Shown here one piece after another: positions 4,311-52,822 of a DNA stretch of 64,000 nt; within the stretch, counting starts at the first letter, position 1, and each line of letters starts with the position of its first letter. The stretch comes from Polymyxa betae A26-41 (lineage: Eukaryota > Protista > Endomyxa: Phytomyxea), in assembly GCA_003693705.1 (NCBI GenBank), contig RBZT01000794.1, forward strand, positions 1 to 64,000. Direction: 5' to 3'. The translations under genes were made by a program, and so were the position numbers. The notes beneath the pieces were generated by a model. It saw nothing but the letters and a program-made list of their open reading frames with translations. It had not been told where the DNA came from and did not search any database.

Positions 4311-5917
4311 TTACATATCCTCAACCGAATAATAATAGGCTTCAACCTTGGAAGCCTCGCGTTTGGCTTCAATCTTGAACCGTTCGGCTTCCCATTTGTT
4401 GGTTCTGAAGACGCCATCCCAGCGATATCCAGGTCGGATCCCATAACGATTCGGCCATAATGGGCCCTCATACACAGGCCGATGCGTCCACACTGTCAGC
4501 TCCTCTTCTTGCTTTAACGTCTTCTCTACGAGCTCCTCGTCAATATCCAAACCGAGCTTCTGAAGTTTCTTCTGAAGTTTCTTCTTCTTCTTCTCCATCT
4601 TTTTGGACTGCTTGCGTTCGTGTTCTTCGCGTTCTTTGGCAGCTTCTTCGCGATTCTGCTTGTCTAAGAGGAATTGCATCGGGTCGCCGAACCGCGATTG
4701 GCGTCTTAAATCCTCGTTCATGGCTGTATCATTGGCGGTTCGTGCGAACGATGTCGCAGCGACCTCCTCAAATTTCTGCTGCCGTGCCGCCTTCTCTTGT
4801 TCCTGAACGATTCCAGACGACCAGAACATGGCCTTCTTGGCTTCCTTTTCCTATACGATAGTCAATACAACAAACATTTGTAAAACTTTTCAAAACTTTT
4901 TCCAATCGTTGCTGTTCGGCAACCGCCTTTTCGACATCCACAGCACGACCATGAGCATCACGAACAACCGTCTGCGAGACGATCGCCTTTCTCGGCGGTG
5001 ATAAGTCAGCATTAGCCGGCGGGCGCCTGGGAGGAGACCGATCTGCAGACCTGCTGGGAGAGTCGTGACGCCGCCTTCTCGGTGGGCTCAAATCGGGAGA
5101 CGCAGATCGACCTCTTCTTGGAGGCGACAAATCCGGCCCAGCAGATGATGGAGAACCCTGACGCCTTCTAGGTGGTGACAGGTCGGGAGAGTCGTGACGC
5201 ATTCTGGGCGGCGATAGATCTGGAGAGTCGTGGCGCCTTCTGGGAGGCAATGGATCAGGAGAGTCGTGACGTCTTCTAGGCGGGGAGATGTCGGGAGAAT
5301 CGTGACGCCTTCCAGGAGGCGAAATGTCGGGAGAGTCATGGCGTTGTCGTCGAGGCGAGGAGTCGCGTCGCGATCTTCGCGGCGACAAGTCGGGCGAGTC
5401 GGGCGACTGAGGTCGTCTCTCTGGAGACAGGTCGACCTCTACTCGAGGTCGTTGTGGAGACAAATCAGCAGATTCGATCTGAAGAGAAGGAGCAGGCTGC
5501 GCCACAGGCTCAGGAGCATCGAGATCTGCTCTCTTATTCAGCCCATACTTTAAGACTGTTGCTGATTGGGCTTTCAAAGGGACTGCAATCTGGGTCCAGC
5601 CGCTTCCGTCTTGTTTTCGCATCTGAACTCGTTTCTCTTCGACTTCTTTGCAACGCGCCTCTTCGGCCTGCTTCAATTCCAGTTGTTCAGCGATCTCCTC
5701 TTCCCCTAGCAGAGAATTAGCATGGCGGCGTCGATATGGTGAAGACAATACGTCGAATGCGTCGCAAACGCTGCAGATCGGCTTCGATGTCTTCATTGTC
5801 CTCGACGATCTTGATCGCACCCTTTTTCCTTTTCTTCGATTTGCTGGCCGTCTTGGCTTTAGTGTCGTCTGGCCCGGCGCTCAGATAGCGCTTCAGATAC
5901 TCAGCTTTAGATGCCAT
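4311..5917 (-). CDS. BUD13: Pre-mRNA splicing factor BUD13/CWC26 (RES complex), 3 exons
   Basis: MASKAEYLKRYLS start, tandem RRHDSPDLSPP repeats, RFGDPM, and NRYGIRPGYRWDGV...YSVEDM C-terminus. Introns about 5706-5751 and about 4852-4897. Confidence 0.95.
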
Positions 5918-8350: not shown

Positions 8351-8459
8351 GACATGATGAGCCCATGTGAAACGATACACGCACATTGACACTATCCATT
8401 CACTGTTGTTGATAACATCAGTGAGAGGCGTTCATTCCAACTTTGTAGTTCGTCGCTTG

Positions 8460-11447
8460 ATGATCGACATCGACTACTCGCCTTCGAAGCGGCGGAAGAT
8501 GTCGGATGTGGATTTCTCCCTGAATACGACAATACAGGAGCCGAGGTTACTGACCACTCGGTCCGGTTATGTCGTCAGCTACGATGAGCTGTGTCGGGTG
8601 ATTATGCAGGCGCTGAGTGATATCGGCTTGAGCCAAACTTGGCGGACGATGGAGAAGGAGTCACACTTGCAATTGTTAGGACAAACTACTGTCTTGCTAT
8701 CAGCGATTATAGATTCTGGGGACTGGGAGAAGCTTTTATCCGAAACACTCCCGTCGCTTTCTTGGCCGGAATTACAAAACCTTGAGAAAGCTAACAAAGC
8801 GGCATATTGCTTGCAAACTTTGGAGCTATGCATAAGCGGCGATAGCGAGAAGGTAAATATCGAAACGAACAATAAAGCCCACTTTAATGGGGTTTCGCAG
8901 GTGCTAGGTTGCATAAAACGGTCACCGGAGGCTCTGCATGGGCGCCTAGCGAGTCTGCTTCTTTACAGGAAAAAGCCTGCAATCACAGATCGATTCATTA
9001 AACTATTTGGAGAGAATTTTTCGTCACGTGCTTCTTTGAAGGCATATATTCTGGTATCTATCCCCTTCTTGTAGGCAGAGTTATCTTAAATCAGCTTAGA
9101 GTCTAACAGACGCCAAGGATTGTTTGGATGATGATCGACTTTTATCTATCATCGATAGTGCTTGTTCTAATCTGCATGAGTCTGACATTGTGCTACCCAA
9201 AACCTTTTGGGCAGCTTCGAGCGATTACCGAAACGAGAATGGCGACTTTACAGATATCCAGAGAAATATCGTTTCGCCAAAAAATCGCAGTATTTGTTTT
9301 GCAGAGCTAATTCGGCTTATTTATTTCGTTTTCTTGGGCTTTGGCTATTCCCAGTCTGCGAAGACTCTCTTAAGAGAATCTAATGTTCAATTTGACTATG
9401 AAATCGGCGATGAACTTAAACAAGATATTCTGACGGGTCGTTGGGATGCTGTGCATTCAGCGTTTAATCGGCAACATTGGCAGTACGCAGATCTCAGCAA
9501 AGCTCGTGTGGCTGTGCTGAAGCAGCATTTTCTTGAACTTTGTGAATCAGGTAACTTCACTCAAGTAGGTTCAGTTATAAGCTTTTTGGTGCCGTACCAA
9601 ATGCTCATTTTCAGGCGATCGAAGTTCTGCGTCGGGATGATGCTAAATCTTTGGCCCCTCTATCAAGGTTCATTTTGTTTACCGATCCCCATAAATTACG
9701 TGAAGCTGCTCTCTTCGATGGTTCCAATGGCAATTCTCGGCTTCAACTCTGGGAGTATGTGCAGGTCAAAGATGATGGTGTATTTTTTTCTCAACTCTGA
9801 ATTGCAAAAGTCGCTACTTCAACGAGAGCATGGCTCGTATCCAGTCCAGTTAGTCGATCTTCTTGATGCTGCAATCGATTTCGATGTCAAAAACTGCAAA
9901 CTTCATAATCGCCCAAAGGAACTTCCTCACTCTTTACTGAGGCGTCATGAATGCACGGACGTCGATTTTCCAAATAATTGCATACAGGTAATACTGAATT
10001 GTCATATCCACTGTTCATATTAAAGTTTTGAAGGTTCTATCAGGGCATACTGACGAGGTAATCGCTGTCAATGGGAAACGTATGAGAAGAATGACGATCG
10101 TTGCGAGCTAGGTATGGTTTGTGGCTTTTTCACATGATGGAAGTCGACTTGCATCCGCATCCAAAGATGCAACTGTGAGAATCTGGGAAATGAAACATGT
10201 AAGCGTTGGTTGGTTTAGCATAGTTGTTTCTAATCACATTAGGATGCGGATTCTCGATGGTATCAGTTGCACACATTCCACCTGAATGCCAAGGCCAGTC
10301 ACTTGTGTTGGTCAGCTGACGATTCTTGTTTGGTCACTTGCGCTTATAAGAAACGGGTATAGATGCCTATGATTGTTTGTTTCTGGTTTACAATTATATC
10401 GTCATCCAGGTGTTCATTTGGGATGTCAACACTGGATTCAAATTATGCACACTGCGAGGGCATAGAGACCATGTACGAATTGAATGAAGCGCTTCTAAAA
10501 GTTGATGTTTGATACAGGTTTTGTCTTGTGCGTGGATCGACGATTCAAACCCGAAGATCGCCACGGGCTCTGTCGACCATCAGGTCGCGCTTTGTCACAT
10601 TTCTGGATTCCTGGATGATAGTGCCATGCCTAATATTGAAACAGATAATAATTTGGAGTTTAAATGGAGACCGTCTTTACAATTGGCGAACCCCAAAAGC
10701 AGTCCAGAATATGTGTGTGTCAAACGATCAGTATGTAATTCTTCTTTATCGGATGCACTGGAATTAGAACTAATCGTAAGAACAGACGGTATCTCTTTGC
10801 CAGCGCAAGTGACTACACAGGTTGCTTTTTATCCTGGTTCTGAGCCACGTTCTTATAATCTTTGGTGTCAGTGCAAGTTTACGATTTGAGAAGCATGGAA
10901 CTAGTCAGCGACTTCCGTGAAGATTCTCAAACATTATGGTCGTTCGCTATATCATCTAGGGAGCCATTATTACTGGTTTCAGTATGGAAACCTGCATCGA
11001 TCCATATGTGGAGGATTGATGACCTTCGTTCTCCAACTATTGTCAGGGAATTCATTGGCGCTGTCCAGGATAAGTACGAGTTCGTTAGATTCTTAATATC
11101 CAACTGAAAGCATCAAGGTTTATGATCCGGTGTGATTTTGGAGGCGTTGATGATCACTTTGTGATTTCGGGCAGTGAAGATTGCAACGTCATTGTCTGGA
11201 ATCGACATACAGGCGAACAGTTATGCAGCTTATCTGGACATCATGTAAGGCATTCGATGTTACGACAGAATTTCCTTTGACGCCCAGATAGGGGAGCGTC
11301 AATTCTGTTAGCTGGAATCCGACGAATCCGCATTTATTCGCATCTGCCAGCGATGATCACTACATTCGGCTATGGGGATCGCAGAGCATGATCAGGCAAA
11401 GGCGAACGGCGAAAGCCGACGATCCGCAAATACCAATGTCATCATAG
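8460..11447 (+). CDS. WDR26: WDR26/Gid7-like CTLH-complex subunit with two LisH-CTLH modules and WD40 repeats, many introns
   Basis: ELCRVIMQALSDIGLSQTWRTMEKES..GDWE and ELIRLI..FGYSQSAKTLLRES..ILTGRWD..KQHFLEL. Then CKLHN..SLLRRHEC..FP and GHTDEVWFVAFSHDGSRLASASKD...SGSED...FASASDDHYIRLW. Confidence 0.85.
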
Positions 11448-21469: not shown

Positions 21470-22645
21470 GATGTCGGAAACTGATTGGTCGGAGGACGAG
21501 GTTCGCCGCTTCATTGAAGACGAAGCTGATACGGAATCATATTTCGTCAAGCTCGACGACCGCAGACGTCAGCGGTCGGGAAAGCAGTTCAATGTAATAG
21601 GAGAAATCGTCTCGATGAACTCGGTATTTTTGTTACTTCAGAAAAACAATGGTTAATTTGAAGCTCAGATGGAACCCAAAGATGCGAGTAAGCATCCATA
21701 TCTCGTCATCGGGCTGCGAGATCTGTATAACAACACGGTGAAGCCGGTGGTAATTTTTCACAGCGAGCGGCTAAGAAGAGAGCTGGAGAGCGGCGACATC
21801 ATCGTGCTCGAAGGAGCATGGGGTCGTAAATATACAAACTTGTGTAGAAGTAATTCTGATTGAGAAGAAAACGTACAACTGACTGTGATACAGAGCAACA
21901 GACGCGTTTTTATATAGCAACAACCGTCAATCCTCTTTTAAAAAAAGAAATTTACATGATCCGTCGAGGAAAAAAAAATGACCCTCAAAGGTGGCATTTA
22001 ATTAAACATACCGGTAGGTTTAAAAACCTGGTGCCCAAGGCCGAAACCCAAACAATCAGCGACCCTGTTCCAATATACGCGTGTCGATCATTACGATCAA
22101 TTAAACTAAAAATCCTGATTTAAGATCAGGAGTTAAGACCCGTTGTCAAACCTAAAATGTACAAAGAGAAACAGAGGAACCTCTTAGGTACTGTGAAACT
22201 TCATTGGCATACATAATACGACGTCAGAGACAACGCAATCTGTGTCATACGAATCTACCTTCAACCGACCTTTGCAGGTCGAAGATCTCGACATATAGAG
22301 TGAGCCATTGCAGCCGCCATTACCGCCAATAAATATCGAGCTCGTCTCAACGAGCTCACTCAACCTTGTCTTCATACGAAGCCCAAATTTGAAATGAACT
22401 GTGCTGGAGGCCGCCACCCCCATTTCAGACACTCTGACGCGAGAGGCCGCTACCCCCTCTTCAGTTGAATACAATAATCCAAAAATGAAATAAAAGACCT
22501 TTTAATGTGTCATTTTACTATTAAAAGACCTTTTAATGTGTCATTTTTGGATTAGGGTTTGTCATTTTTGGAAAATAATTTGTCATTTTTGGATTATGGT
22601 ATTCAACTCTCTTCAAACACTCTCTCATTACTCGGTCTGCTTTAG
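21470..22645 (+). pseudogene. Decayed multi-exon gene of unknown family, interrupted by a MITE
   Basis: MSETDWSEDEVRRF... exon, intron, then KNNG*FEAQMEPK (in-frame TAA 21654-21656). Later EAATPISDTL/EAATPSS[NTL] repeat split by the insertion at 22464-22607. Confidence 0.45.
22464..22607. mobile_element. MITE (~145 bp) with ~25-bp TIRs and target-site duplication
   Basis: GTTGAATACAATAATCCAAAAATGA versus TCATTTTTGGATTATGGTATTCAAC (1 mismatch). Flanks CCTCTTCA / TCTCTTCA. Internal repeats AAAAGACCTTTTAATGTGTCATTTT x2 and TGTCATTTTTGGA x3. Confidence 0.85.
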
Positions 22646-45522: not shown

Positions 45523-45780
45523 GTGCGCTTCCGTCTGACTGCCATGGACGTGGAGTGCCCGCGCTGCCACGCCATGATGCGGCTGGATGAATGTTCCTAC
45601 CATTTTCCGCAACGTGCCGTGCTGTTCCGAATGTGCTGTGCCAATGATGCGGTCGTTCTTCCTCCTTACTCCGACCTGCCGTCACCATTGGTGGAATATC
45701 TGGAACATGGCCACATCCACCATGCTTCATTCATGGAGCATATTCGGACGCTGAATGGGTTGTTCGCTTTTACCTTCACT
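45523..45780 (+). mobile_element. Helitron RepHel N-terminal Cys-rich fragment
   Basis: MDVECPRCHA...E...F.MCC...V.LP..LP..L..YL...FMEHIRTLNGLFAFT, the characteristic Helitron N-terminus. Truncated afterwards. Confidence 0.8.
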
Positions 45781-46421
45781 TGGGGTCGACCGGCAACAAA
45801 TCCCAGGTCGTGGTCCGCCGATCTCCCAGCTATGAATGGCGAGGGAGCGTCTCCACGGATTTATTCCAATCAACTCCAAAATTCATACGTTCCTCATCTC
45901 GTCTCCGATTCTCTAATGCCTCGTTCCCTCGCCTCGCCCTCACCTCCGACTTCCCTGACCTTGAGTCTCCGCTCCGCCTTCGTCTCACCGACACCGCTCC
46001 GTCCCTCGTACGCTCCTCTCCGATCCTCTCACCGACAAGGAAAAGACTCTGTCATTTTCGAAAAACAAACTTAAAAATGACACGTTATTGGGTCCTAACG
46101 TGAAGCACACCTCTCGCAGTCCCAAACCACCACCAATCAAGCATTCAGGACCGGGGTGGACGGCGACCAACGGGCGGCCAGAAGCAGTGACATTCACCGT
46201 GCCAATTCTGCGGGTCGAACAGTAACTTGCAAGGTCGCCTGGCGGCAATGCTGGCTTGTCTACTGGTGCAACGACACCTACCGTAGATCCCGGGGAAATA
46301 GCCACCCCGACCAAGTAGCCACTACCAATATGCTGATGAAACGTGCGTTGTGTCGCGGAGAAAATAAATAGTGTAACATTACATTTGTCTTTATTTGCCA
46401 ATACAGAATACATCATCTGTG

Positions 46422-46839
46422 ATGATTGAGTTGTCTGCAAATGTTGAGATCGTTGGTCTCAGGAAAGGGACCAATGGACGTCAATGTGAGGTCCACCGTG
46501 AATGCTGTGGCATCTGCGTTGTTACAGGGTCTCTGATCCGGTTCAAATTCACCGTTATAGAAAGTGGGTGTCTAATACTTGAATTTCATTTCATTGAAAG
46601 CGTATCCATCGGAAAGAGGTTTCGAATAGGCTGTTTGTGCAGTCTTAATTGCTGACGGAATCGAGAATCGCCGAGTCGGTTTTCTGCCGCGTAACTGTTT
46701 CCCAATACGAAAACGCTTTGTTGATAAATTCGCACAAGTAATTGAGCTTTCAGAAAACACCCACAAACGGCGAAAAGATGCTCGGAACTGTGGCATGGCG
46801 CCATGCATTTTATTGGATTTTATTCATATTTTTAAATGA
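46422..46839 (+). CDS. Transposon-borne small protein, HIRAN-like pattern with C-x2-H-x2-CC motif (possibly disabled)
   Basis: NVEIVGLRKGTNGRQCEVHRECCG..GSLIRF, an intron near 46565-46600/46629, then AVCAVLIADGIENRRVGFLPR..FAQVIEL..RNCGMA. Lies wholly inside the TIRs. Confidence 0.7.
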
Positions 46840-46842
46840 AGT

Positions 46843-48121
46843 TTATGTGCTTTTGATTCCGACATGACGCCATGTGTTTATAATTGTTTCCGCCGTTATA
46901 CGGTTCCATGCGTCCAAATCCCATTGGGCTACGATCTGGCGAGAAGGTTTTTCTCGATCGAACGTCTCTCCGAGCGATAACGAATTCCACCTGGCGCTCT
47001 CTACAATATTGTTTGAATGGTTTGTTGATTCCTACGTATAATATTTGAAGTTGGACGTGTACCCGTTAACGACAATTGACAAATTCCACCTAGTTCCGCC
47101 TAAGAGTGTGATTTTAAACATTCAAGTTTTGTTCTCACAAACCTCACTTCCTAGCTGCTCGAAAGAGCTAACAATTTCTTGGCTCATGTGGGCCGAAAAT
47201 CCGTCCATTATAAGATAGGAATACTGTGCAGATCGCTGCAGCAGCCATGGTCGCCAAACCCTAAGATCCATTCTCATTACTGATATATCGCACCAGGCGT
47301 TGTCCTGAACAGTCCTTACGTACGACATTTGCAGGATAACCTCGAGCAGTACAGTTGCCGGTGACTTCCTTATACACGTGGGCCTTTGGTTTGCCCTTTA
47401 GTATAAGAAACAAAGGCAGCTTTTCTCCTGACAACGAAACCTCTAAGTTTGCGGTAGCCCTTCCAGAAGACCCAGTGGAAACGACATCAATGGTATGACT
47501 TCCCCGTCGCTCTATTGTTGCTGTCATTAGGTTGTCAAATGGAACTTCAATTTCGTCGATGTTGACAATCAGCTCAGGGGGAAGTTGCATCATGGCAATG
47601 TGCTCATTAACGCATGCAACAAAATCAGCGACTGTGTCAGCACAATGACGTGTATTTTGAGCTGTATGTGTGGCTCGGCGCTGTACTAGCTTTTCGCGAT
47701 GCAAGAATCTATAAATTCGCTTTCGTAGGGTTACAGGATTGCCGGCCAGAAAACCTGTGCGAAACCTACACCATTAATCCAAACCCTAAACCTAGGTTCG
47801 CAAGAAACCCGCTTACCGTTGAAATTCGTGCAGCAACATCGACACAGAAACTGGCACCGAACGTGCCCTCCCAACTTCAAAGTTATGTAGAAGGTGGTCA
47901 GAAACATCCTGGTCCTCGACATGAACAGAGCTACTAGGAAGGTGCATTTTAGCACCCGATTTCATTGTTTCCACATCTAGAAGCTTCTTCCATCGTTTGA
48001 TATTTCGGAGATCATCATGGGATTTCTTTGCTGTTGCATAGACACGACCAGGCTGTCCATAAGCCTCTCGTGCGATGGCTTTCTTCTCCAGAAGATTGTA
48101 GCGAGACATTCCACGACCCAT
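46843..48121 (-). pseudogene. pogo/DDE_1 transposase with HTH N-terminus, frameshifted
   Basis: RRATH, IVNIDE, GEKLPLFLILKGKP, QDNAW.D, LIMDGFSAH, GYTS.LQIL(Y)VGINKPFK (third Asp changed to Tyr), AWNRITAETIINTW. Intron 47766-47816. Confidence 0.9.
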
Positions 48122-50059
48122 GCTAAACGGATATGTGAATACGCATGGGCAAGCCGCATACCGTTAGAATCTATTTTTATAAGGCTACACAGTCGTGTAC
48201 TCAGTGAGAAAAAATACACCAAATCGATTCAAAACTCCCGGCGAAATAGCCACTACCCTATCAAATCAGTATCCATTTTATCAGATCCGTAGTGGCTATT
48301 TCCCCGGGATCTACGGTAGGCCAGTCAGCAGGCCAATATCCAATAGCCGATTGAACAGGCTGACATCAGCCACAATTTAATAAGGAACCCAATCATTTTT
48401 TATACGAAATCAAAAGGTCTTTTTTCTCTCGTTTAAAATGGTCTCACTTTGTATATCAATGTACATTCCCCATTGCGTGAACGCTTGGGGAACAAAAAAC
48501 GACAAAAACCGTTATGCTGATTTTGAGAGGAGGTAGTGGATTTTTTAGAATGAGGAAAAAGAAAAAACAACCCCAGCCAAGTTCGTAGTTTAACGTCGTT
48601 GCGGACGATATGGGTGTAGATGTTGTGATAGTGCATGAAGTTGGTTGGTGATGTTGGTGTTGGTGTTGGTGAAGTTGGTTTTGATGATGACGTTGTAAGG
48701 TTTACCTAATAATCAAATAAATGTATTCATGAACACGGAAAATCAAAATTACTTGATATAAAAAAAGGAAATTCACGAATCCAAGGTTATATTTGAGGCG
48801 TCCCCCAAATAATAGCATATATAGGCCTCCCCATAATGCTGCAATCCGAAAATATTTGATGAATAGATGGCGAAGATGAGAATGAATGCCAAAACCAAAA
48901 CGAAAAGCGAAGATGAAACGGGTGCACGCCAAAAACGTTGATGCATGCAGCAGACCTTGCAGTGGCGATTTTTGTTTTTGGGTATTCGGGCTGTATTAGA
49001 TTTATTTAAAAATTACTATAAATCTTGATTTTCCACAGAAGTGCGTACGCAGTAACATGAACAGCGTGCGCAATATTTGTCTATGACTGACGCCAAGATC
49101 TGATGAACAATAATAATGCGAACCTGAAGAAAGTATGAAGCTATACGTTAATAATATTGGGCTCGACCTTCCAGAGGTCCGCACGGATGCCGTACGGACC
49201 TGAGCTGCTGGAGCTGGGATTCGAGCCTGGAAAAAATCAGAATTCCTTACCGACTGACGAAGTCTTATCAAAACTTGTAGTACTATATCGCGATTTGAAG
49301 AATCCGCTCCAGGGCACAACGCCTTGTTCTAACCTTAATTTGATGTCATTAAAACTGCCATAGCTGAGATTCTGGAAAATTGAAAACGGCGATGAACTTC
49401 TCAGAGTATGAAGACACGCAAAGATTACGAATGGACCGGGTAGAATTTAGGAAGAAGAGAACAAAAACAATCAAGCTCCAAGGAACTTACAACGACGTCG
49501 AACTGAATGCAAGAATGGAAATGAAATTATGGGGAGCTCACTTGCAAAGAATATACAACCGATGATGAAAACAAGGGAAATGATATACGAACAGGACGAT
49601 TGGTAAAGAAAATCATTTACAGCAACATCAGGGCAAATTCAGAATTGATGAAAGAAATATGAAGTGAAGCCGATGAAGAAATGAATGTTGCAGACAAGAA
49701 GATGAAACAGGAGAAAATCCAAAACTTACAAGATGGCAAAAGGAAGTAGTGAAGATAGAGATAGAGGAACAGATAGGACGATTCCGACGAGCACAACCTA
49801 TCAATGACGAGATTAAGAAAGAAAAATTGAAAAAAGAACTAGCCTTGAAGATAAATCTAGACAGCCAAGATAAAGACAGAAGAAGACAATAAGATGAAGA
49901 AGATTTGGAGAAATTTGAGAAGGATGAAAGTGATGAGGAGGATGAGGAGGAAGATGAAAACACCGATGAAGAAATGACGAAGATAGTTATAACTCCAAAG
50001 AAGAATAAGAGCAACAAAGCGCTAACGGAGGAAAATAAGGGGAGAAAACTTACAGCGCC

Positions 50060-51095: not shown

Positions 51096-52490
51096 ATGGA
51101 GACTATGGCGATTATGATGGACAATGAGGAGAATCAGTCAACGCAAAATTTGGCTGACAGTGGAGGTGTACAGCAGCCTGGTAATTCAGTTGCGGACAAA
51201 TCGAATGATGATGCAAGCTTCGAATTCATTCAACGGTGCATTCGTTATTAACACGAAATCACCGCCTTGTGTGAATCTGTTGATTACACAATGAGTGATT
51301 CAGATGTGGACATTGGGAAACATGCTTCATAGGCTAAGTGGGAGATATAGTTCCCAGCCAGTGAATAATATTTCTGGACTCTGGTAGACCAGCGGCACAG
51401 GCTGTGCCGCGTGTGGTTTTTCAACCATGTCTGTAGAAATTGCGCCTGGACATCACAGAAACTAACTGACCAAAAGTTACAATAACAGCTCCACAGCTGT
51501 TAGTCCAGGGCCTACTTAAGCAGTACTCTACACACCCCTTTTTTGAATGTGACTGCATTCCTCACCAGAATCAGGCACTCAGGCCTCTGGCAGAATTAAG
51601 TAGGTGACCCCCAACTCAGATGAACCACGCATCTTTTCACGAGTTGTGTAGCCGGTCCAGTCCACAAAACCCAAAAACGTCCAGTACCATGTTATTCTGT
51701 AGAAATTGCGCCTGGACTTCACAGCAACTAACTGACCAAAAGGTACAATAACAGCTCCACAGCTGTTAGTCCCTGGCCTACTTAAGCAGTACTCCACACA
51801 TGTGAACCACCTTTGTTGATGGCTCTGCGTACAAAGGATATTATCCAATTTTGTTTGAATATACGAAATATGACCAGCAAGTTCAGGACAATCAGAGAAT
51901 GGGAGGGAATGATATTCCAGACGGCCATTTCTGTCTTTTATAGATCCTTCTTTGTTGATATGATTGCCAAATTTGTTCTGAAAGAACCGAAGGAGGAACT
52001 TGTGGACAATGAAGTCATGGGTGCTTTAAACAATTACAAGGTTAATGACGACTAGCTCGTCGCATGATCATATTCGTATGATTATCAAGAAGAGTGTAAG
52101 ATGAAGCCATCATCTGCCAGAATAATGGATCTTCTGACTCAACTGGATAAGATCATTGAGGAGCATAACTGCCAGTCTTTGTTTGATTCTGATGTGGGGA
52201 AGGAGCATTGGATTCGTTTGGTCACGGAATGCTTGCAACCTTATATTTTTAAGAATCATTTGCTGAATATGATTAATTTAATTGCTCGAAACCGGAGCTT
52301 AGAACTGACCAGGTTGCGTTTGTCGAGCAACTGCAGGCAGACGTGGACAAGTTTGAGTCAGAAGGGAGTCGCATTCTTATTCTGTCGGATACGGATCATG
52401 GACAGAAGACCGCTACGGTTTCGAAGAAACGTGGGGTTTCTAACCAGAATAATGGTACTCAGCACAAAAAGCGTAAGCTTGAATCTATAA
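51096..52490 (+). pseudogene. Degenerate gag-like/retroelement ORF interrupted by a TRIM
   Basis: Stop-ridden coding-like text (PRVVFQPC|EPPLLMALRTKDII...). Partial second copy at 52614-52822. The gag identity is inferred from context only. Confidence 0.4.
51431..51798 (-). mobile_element. TRIM (miniature non-autonomous LTR retrotransposon)
   Basis: 102-bp direct repeats at 51431-51532 and 51697-51798, starting TGT on the minus strand. TSD CATGT (51426-30, 51799-803). PBS-like TGGTACTGGACG (51689-51678). PPT AAAAAAGGGG before the 3' repeat. Confidence 0.9.
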
Positions 52491-52613
52491 AAGCGCTTAT
52501 GATCTACATAATACATTCAATCTACAATTCAGTTTACAGTCACTGCTACCTGTTCTAATCGGAAGACTCCACAAAGAGTTCTTTAGTTATCGTCTGCGAT
52601 CAGAGAGAGATAC

Positions 52614-52822
52614 TGTGTGAATCTGCGGATTACACAATGAGTGATTCTGTCACTGAATCAGATGTGGACATTGGGACACATGCTGATAGGCATCGTGGGA
52701 GATATATTTCCCAGCCTGTGAATGTTTCTGGTAGACCAACAGCACCGGCTGTGCCACGTGTGGTCTTTCAACCCTGCGAACCCCCTTTGTTGACGGCTTT
52801 GCGGACAAAGGATATTATTACA
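52614..52822 (+). repeat. Diverged duplicate of 51268-51430 + 51804-51850 (TRIM-free allele)
   Basis: Shared TGTGTGAATCTG..GATTACACAATGAGTGATTC...TTTCAACC.TG.GAACC.CCTTTGTTGA...ACAAAGGATATTAT. Confidence 0.85.

Follow-up and report, generated by a model that had tools for sequence, protein, structure and literature searches.

A decayed pogo transposon in Polymyxa betae belongs to a two-gene DD35D lineage whose second protein has a predicted HIRAN-like fold

The stretch of DNA analysed here (64,000 nucleotides; the window), from the plant-root parasite Polymyxa betae, contains a decayed copy of a DD35D pogo transposon with two convergent genes, and comparison with its relatives makes it virtually certain that it represents a two-gene pogo lineage in which a transposase and a second gene (ORF2) move and diverge together. 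The element spans 46281-48316, with TA at either flank and terminal inverted repeats (TIRs) of 25 bp, and is laid out as follows.

46279-46280, no strand: TA target-site duplication, left
46281-46305, plus strand: left TIR, 25 bp, begins CCGTA
46422-46563, plus strand: ORF2 exon 1, encoding beta strand 1 (EIVGL) and the C-x2-H-x2-C loop
46564-46609, plus strand: inferred phase-1 intron of ORF2, 46 nt
46610-46839, plus strand: ORF2 exon 2, with the VGFLPR strand, the basic helix and the stop (46837-39)
46843-48121, minus strand: pogo DD35D transposase pseudogene, ATG at 48121, TAA at 46843-45
48236-48256, plus strand: subterminal TIR-motif copy close to the right end
48292-48316, minus strand: right TIR, 25 bp
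48317-48318, no strand: TA target-site duplication, right

A first-pass annotation had described perfect 25-bp TIRs with TA duplications around a minus-strand DDE_1 transposase and a plus-strand, intron-containing gene. The repeats were borne out at both ends and the gene coordinates were confirmed, with the TGA of ORF2 lying 3 bp from the TAA of the transposase. The two TIRs are perfectly complementary (29 nt if flanking bases are counted), and the 64-kb window holds no other perfect long inverted pair. A partial internal repeat of the left TIR follows it at about 46306-46326, and the subterminal motif copy at 48236-48256 is a probable extra transposase-binding site.

The copy had also been described as decayed, on account of a catalytic Asp changed to Tyr and of frameshifts, and both are seen. 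The third catalytic Asp is Tyr in the window transposase (codon 47036-38), whereas the DDD triad is present in relatives and the sister elements, C723 among them, retain the Asp; the gene also has several frameshifts, as well as two short putative introns at about 47816-47766 and 47085-47140. ORF2 is dead in addition, with a premature TAG in exon 2 (46627-29), a 9-bp deletion and an Arg codon (46669-71) in place of a fourth Cys that occupies this position in 99% of the family. Both genes of the window copy are thus dead, and the element is a decayed copy of a cut-and-paste transposon.

Several other features of the window were recorded. The pogo element lies about 200 bp downstream of an ORF at 45523-46074 that has one paralogue, at C517, and no Pfam match; its first half resembles the Cys-rich N-terminus of Helitron Rep-helicases, and its second half is a repeat present at about 70 genomic places. 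A possible MITE at 22463-22608 consists of a 26-nt inverted repeat pair around 21-31-nt tandem repeats. A degenerate direct duplication at 51180-52820, with a spacing of about 1.35 kb and a 105-nt repeat, is probably a decayed retroelement or a local duplication, and a 36-nt tandem repeat at 5149-5364 lies within a long minus-strand reading frame (4771-5880).

The present elements share with the DD35D group of the pogo superfamily the TA duplication, short TIRs, a DDE_1 transposase, accompanied in relatives by HTH matches, and the DD35D spacing. TA flanks both ends in all 13 elements for which both ends are available. DDE_1 (PF03184) matches a fragment of the window transposase at E 4e-4 and intact relatives at E 1e-18 to 1e-23, while HTH_Tnp_1, CENP-B_N and HTH_28 match the transposases of relatives and give no match to the N-terminal piece of the window transposase. 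In three intact transposases 35 residues separate the second Asp from the third, as expected of the DD35D group; a place in Passer rather than among Fot-like elements is a tentative assignment. In the accessible portions of the surveys by Gao et al. 2020 (PMC7386202), where Passer occurs in stramenopiles, and Dupeyron et al. 2020 (PMC7325037), where DD35D groups 33-40, including TC2, are defined, Passer and TC2 elements have one or two ORFs that encode transposase only, with no accessory gene, whereas here the second gene is standard. Transposase-only coding is the usual pogo trait; we treat the conserved second gene as a variant of it and not as a ground for exclusion from the superfamily.

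To find other copies, the genome (1001 contigs, 27,085,814 bases) was searched with the two ORF2 exons separately and with profiles, the full-length queries being the paralogue L021, which naturally lacks the intron, and proteins from databases rather than the spliced ORF2 of the window. In two full-length sister elements (93% and 79% identical) both genes are present and arranged as in the window copy. ORF2 matches were found at about 28 genomic places and fall into at least five families, whose TIRs differ and all start TA/CCGTA. At 18 of these approximately 28 places a transposase lies tail-to-tail with ORF2, and most of the remaining places abut a TIR, the classification leaving aside C249, C690 and C949. 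Four loci (C503, C607, C794, C703) are deletion derivatives that span 0.4-1.1 kb between TIRs, and at three others (C990, C417, C313) a TIR stands beside a partial ORF2. This distribution contradicts the possibility, raised in the first-pass annotation, that ORF2 homologues are ordinary single-copy host genes unlinked to transposases. Ordinary host HIRAN genes do occur in the genome, one for a Rad5-like helicase and another recognised by a weak match (L074 on C846 and L075 on C19), and neither has a sequence match to the ORF2 profile.

The presence of ORF2 is restricted within pogo. The genome's strongest DDE_1 matches (C965, C202, C116, C427 and C269) are just 24-31% identical to the ORF2-bearing clade, and no ORF2 match was found on their contigs; ORF2 therefore marks one clade and is dispensable for pogo chemistry generally. 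The two clade members without ORF2 (C607 and C195) both run to contig ends and are hence uninformative on its absence.

The likely splice acceptor of ORF2 reads AT at 46608-09 in the window copy and AG in both sisters, where it yields a codon count identical to that of intronless homologues; the in-frame AG at 46599-46600 is an alternative. In families B and E the same position holds an intron of different sequence, and ORF2 is intronless in family D and in the metagenomic copies checked.

Shortened derivatives were seen as well. MITE-like family D derivatives of ~400 bp keep the 5' part of ORF2 at C607, C794, C703 and C990 (L042, L044, L048 and L043, respectively), and the 1123-bp C503 derivative (L021) keeps almost the whole intronless ORF2, with a fuller matching element at C778 (L097). 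MITEs of 125-220 bp at C133, C424 and C728 (L052, L054, L056) retain no trace of coding sequence, and their TIRs closely resemble those of the window family. The C723 element has a doubled left terminus, a second left-end copy (C723:66980-67071; L058) lying 409 bp upstream of it.

Outside the genome, a search seeded with L021 gave an ORF2 family of 257 proteins and then of 770 clusters at 50% identity (E<1e-10), in which the named members are from Spongospora subterranea; the Atlas cluster nearest in shape consists of eukaryotic proteins, mostly from diatoms (phylum known for three members only). Sixteen distinct metagenomic elements were picked by length of contig or by divergence, regardless of neighbours, and a convergent DDE_1-type transposase lies beside ORF2 in 14 of them. 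The remaining two have a TA/CCGTA end upstream, one of their contigs stopping just past ORF2. Other copies of the family might have lacked ORF2, as the first-pass annotation had allowed; both sisters and these 14 elements carry it. In two outside families both genes are intact in copies that are 99.8% identical and have different flanks, which indicates recent movement of the two genes as a unit; the intact, recently mobile elements (L086-L090) are 2.2-2.3 kb long. The gap between ORF2 and transposase ranges from -4 to 127 bp across elements, with stops that abut or overlap in several families, so the 3-bp spacing of the window copy is typical and not fixed.

A metagenomic element (L063:4892-6534; JGI Ga0255039_10000164) has two intact ORFs and a single TIR, none having been found on the right. 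Its contig is gene-dense, with 27% GC and patatin and Mrr-like genes, has a giant-virus-like look, and also holds a second, unrelated DDE_1 fragment (8382-8840). If the contig is a giant virus, viruses may ferry such elements between protists. Many ORF2 homologues (P0143, P0171, P0208, P0231, P0162, P0166, P0238) bear long low-complexity acidic or basic tails of up to about 300 aa at either end, in which no Pfam domain was found; P0171 still has a TA/CCGTA end upstream. Low-sensitivity scans gave no ORF2 relative in an IMG/VR pattern search and, in GTDB, a single 30-residue match that overlaps a topoisomerase I-like ORF on the opposite strand and was rejected as spurious.

For trees and dN/dS, exon and frame pieces were set into HMM columns. 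Across 17 lineages with about 60% amino-acid divergence, ORF2 and transposase distances are correlated (Mantel r 0.73, p 0.0002), and the two trees have 6 of 14 splits in common, against 0.14 expected and a chance maximum of 3, their deep branches being poorly supported; another comparison of the two genes gave a similar picture. This co-divergence shows long linkage and is not proof of physical interaction. Between diverged lineages the dN/dS of ORF2 is mostly 0.05-0.22, like that of the transposase, the deepest comparisons having reached saturation at synonymous sites; it rises to 0.69 in one pair that includes L068, a copy with no transposase. Decayed genomic copies that are closest to one another give ratios of about 1 or higher, from few changes. 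Purifying selection between lineages combined with neutral decay after insertion points to selection of ORF2 for the element's spread and not for the host's benefit.

These data bear on the idea that ORF2 was captured from a host, or benefits the host as cargo, and is passively carried. Transposons often acquire host fragments, and copies without transposase exist (L068, C249); L068, however, still has a TIR-like end upstream, and no single-copy host version of the gene was found. Linkage, selection pattern, intact mobile copies and co-divergence largely refute passive carriage, which we regard as very improbable indeed. Taken together, they uphold the earlier reading of the layout as integrated rather than as a random captured fragment.

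We then turned to the protein itself. ORF2 had no Pfam, PDB sequence or Atlas feature match; the best sequence match to HIRAN (PF08797) was E 0.097, in 1 of 84 ORF2 members and below the Pfam cut-off. Matches to conotoxin, DUF6578, retinol-binding and eS26 entries were weak and were dismissed. The family has four near-invariant residues arranged as C-x2-H-x2-C...C (each present in 98-99% of about 250 sequences), an Arg conserved in 96%, a Phe position that is aromatic throughout, a basic helix and a net charge of about zero. The first-pass annotation had proposed metal binding at a C-x2-H-x2-CC motif. Its C-x2-H-x2-C part stands, and on sequence grounds the Cys3-His site probably binds zinc; the adjacent second C does not, since that position is variable and no feature of the family, the true fourth Cys being distant, just ahead of VGFLPR.

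The Atlas's own low-confidence ORF2 model had no structural match, whereas AlphaFold models of members of two distant subfamilies reached pLDDT 92 and 96. Among 48,161 chains, the sole ones at Z of at least 5 were lp_0118, a HIRAN protein (7.5 and 7.3 for models 1 and 2), the HLTF HIRAN domain (6.8 and 6.3) and Rad5 (5.5 and 5.6), all values lying below the 8 under which Z may reflect a common arrangement of elements. The next match scored 4.5 or less in both models, and the HIRAN matches cover 84-95 residues of the predicted barrel. With Foldseek, the top four matches of model 1 were HLTF HIRAN (E 0.013, probability 1.0); for model 2, HIRAN chains were highest in probability and not best in E-value. 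We accept a HIRAN-like fold because three independent HIRAN proteins top both models, and consider it very probable on this modelling. The earlier suggestion that VEIVG...VGFLPR follows a HIRAN pattern thus gains support, at moderate scores, and the fold did not prove unrelated to HIRAN. ORF2 is accordingly predicted to be a HIRAN-type beta-barrel of roughly 123 aa with a Cys3-His site and a basic helix.

HIRAN domains bind DNA 3' ends, and HLTF grips the 3' end through Y72, Y93 and D94 (PMC5773155, PMC4666394). ORF2 shares with HLTF, Rad5 and lp_0118 the predicted barrel, the GL strand and the VG(F/Y)LPR strand, and differs in its lack of a Pfam match, its Cys/His loop and fourth Cys, the absence of a Y72/Y93-like clamp, its extra basic helix, and in being stand-alone and transposon-borne. 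The loops that presumably match HLTF Y72 and Y93, placed by shared motifs rather than by superposition, have no conserved aromatic residue (at most 13% in loop 1; at most 13%, mostly below 5%, in loop 2). Loop 1 holds the Cys/His insert, and in both models loop 2 is a tight beta-hairpin in place of an NPYD-type loop. As both the Pfam and the pocket tests failed, ORF2 is not filed under PF08797 and would at most function in a HIRAN-like way.

The proposal that ORF2 binds 3'-OH ssDNA as HLTF does therefore fared poorly: the clamp aromatics are unconserved in the motif-mapped loops. A canonical HIRAN capping 3'-OH ssDNA ends exactly like HLTF would fit the HIRAN fold matches and a conserved Glu near the D94-equivalent position. 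Tc1/mariner excision leaves 2-3-nt 3' overhangs. The HLTF pocket, which accommodates a dinucleotide (PMC4666394), would suit such ends. Set against the rarity of loop aromatics and the replacement of the NPYD-type loop, we consider this reading quite improbable.

Roughly even odds attach to the reading that we rank first, in which ORF2 would be a DNA-binding helper acting at or after transposition and serving the element rather than the host; it stands ahead of anti-silencing, a transposase regulator, the canonical 3'-OH cap and passive cargo, in that order. Pogo chemistry involves the HTH of the transposase on the TIRs and cut-and-paste at TA, and the present transposases would likewise bind the TIRs by their own HTH and cut and paste at TA. 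The promoter of ORF2 would lie close to the opposite TIR, and the ORF2 protein would work in trans on excised ends, gapped insertion junctions or target or fork DNA, thereby helping the element to spread more successfully in a new host. Its DNA contact would run through a remodelled surface (the conserved Arg, Phe and Tyr and the basic helix) and not through the HLTF tyrosine clamp.

An anti-silencing or counter-defence factor that binds the element's own DNA, RNA or chromatin and keeps it expressed, as the VANC proteins of Arabidopsis VANDAL elements do, would also account for element-level selection and for the confinement of ORF2 to a single clade. Such a role would suit a small zinc protein that has a basic helix, and the HIRAN 3'-end pocket is not kept. 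Counter-defence proteins, however, usually evolve fast and track a single host, whereas ORF2 is conserved across very different hosts and on a giant-virus-like contig, and no chromatin-related domain was found in it; we judge this reading unlikely. A shade less likely again is that ORF2 would bind the transposase and regulate or chaperone it, limiting or timing its activity or aiding nuclear import, perhaps together with convergent transcription across the neighbouring stops. Tight co-divergence with the transposase, the near-neutral charge of ORF2 and stops that abut or overlap in several families speak for it, but the best structural matches are DNA-binding domains and the variable gap indicates that overlap is not required.

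Returning to the DNA-binding helper, we tentatively extend it to a widespread two-component clade of protist pogo elements, in which the DD35D transposase would need, or be strongly aided by, a zinc-HIRAN protein at ends, insertion gaps or fork targets.

Multi-gene precedents are known from other groups. The Harbinger partner is Myb/SANT-like, whereas the present pogo transposases retain their own HTH. A layout like that of ORF2, with a DDE transposase and a small partner encoded tail-to-tail, is found in PIF/Harbinger elements of Ectocarpus (PMC12477816), and among Kolobok accessory genes KolX is a zinc-binding partner beside a DDE transposase (PMC9587614), although both belong to other superfamilies and their partner proteins are unrelated. 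The ciliate TBE/Tec elements are multi-ORF Tc1/mariner transposons (PMC7325037); they differ in being DD34E and ciliate-specific, with three ORFs and long or telomeric TIRs. We found no paper on HIRAN-bearing or two-gene pogo elements in the literature searched, which lay outside Repbase, Dfam and most subscription journals, and a second, co-evolving gene in DD35D pogo is apparently undescribed.

Pogo and Tc1/mariner are textbook one-protein transposons and a source of gene-transfer tools. That a second protein has been kept over about 60% amino-acid divergence implies that transposition or host evasion involves a step beyond the one-protein model, and a large unannotated protein family (the 770 clusters) gains a context and a fold. 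The intact L086-L090 elements make the role of ORF2 directly testable. If a zinc-HIRAN partner does serve the transposase, it would represent a class of partner so far unreported for ITm transposons, and the HIRAN fold would have a use not reported before.
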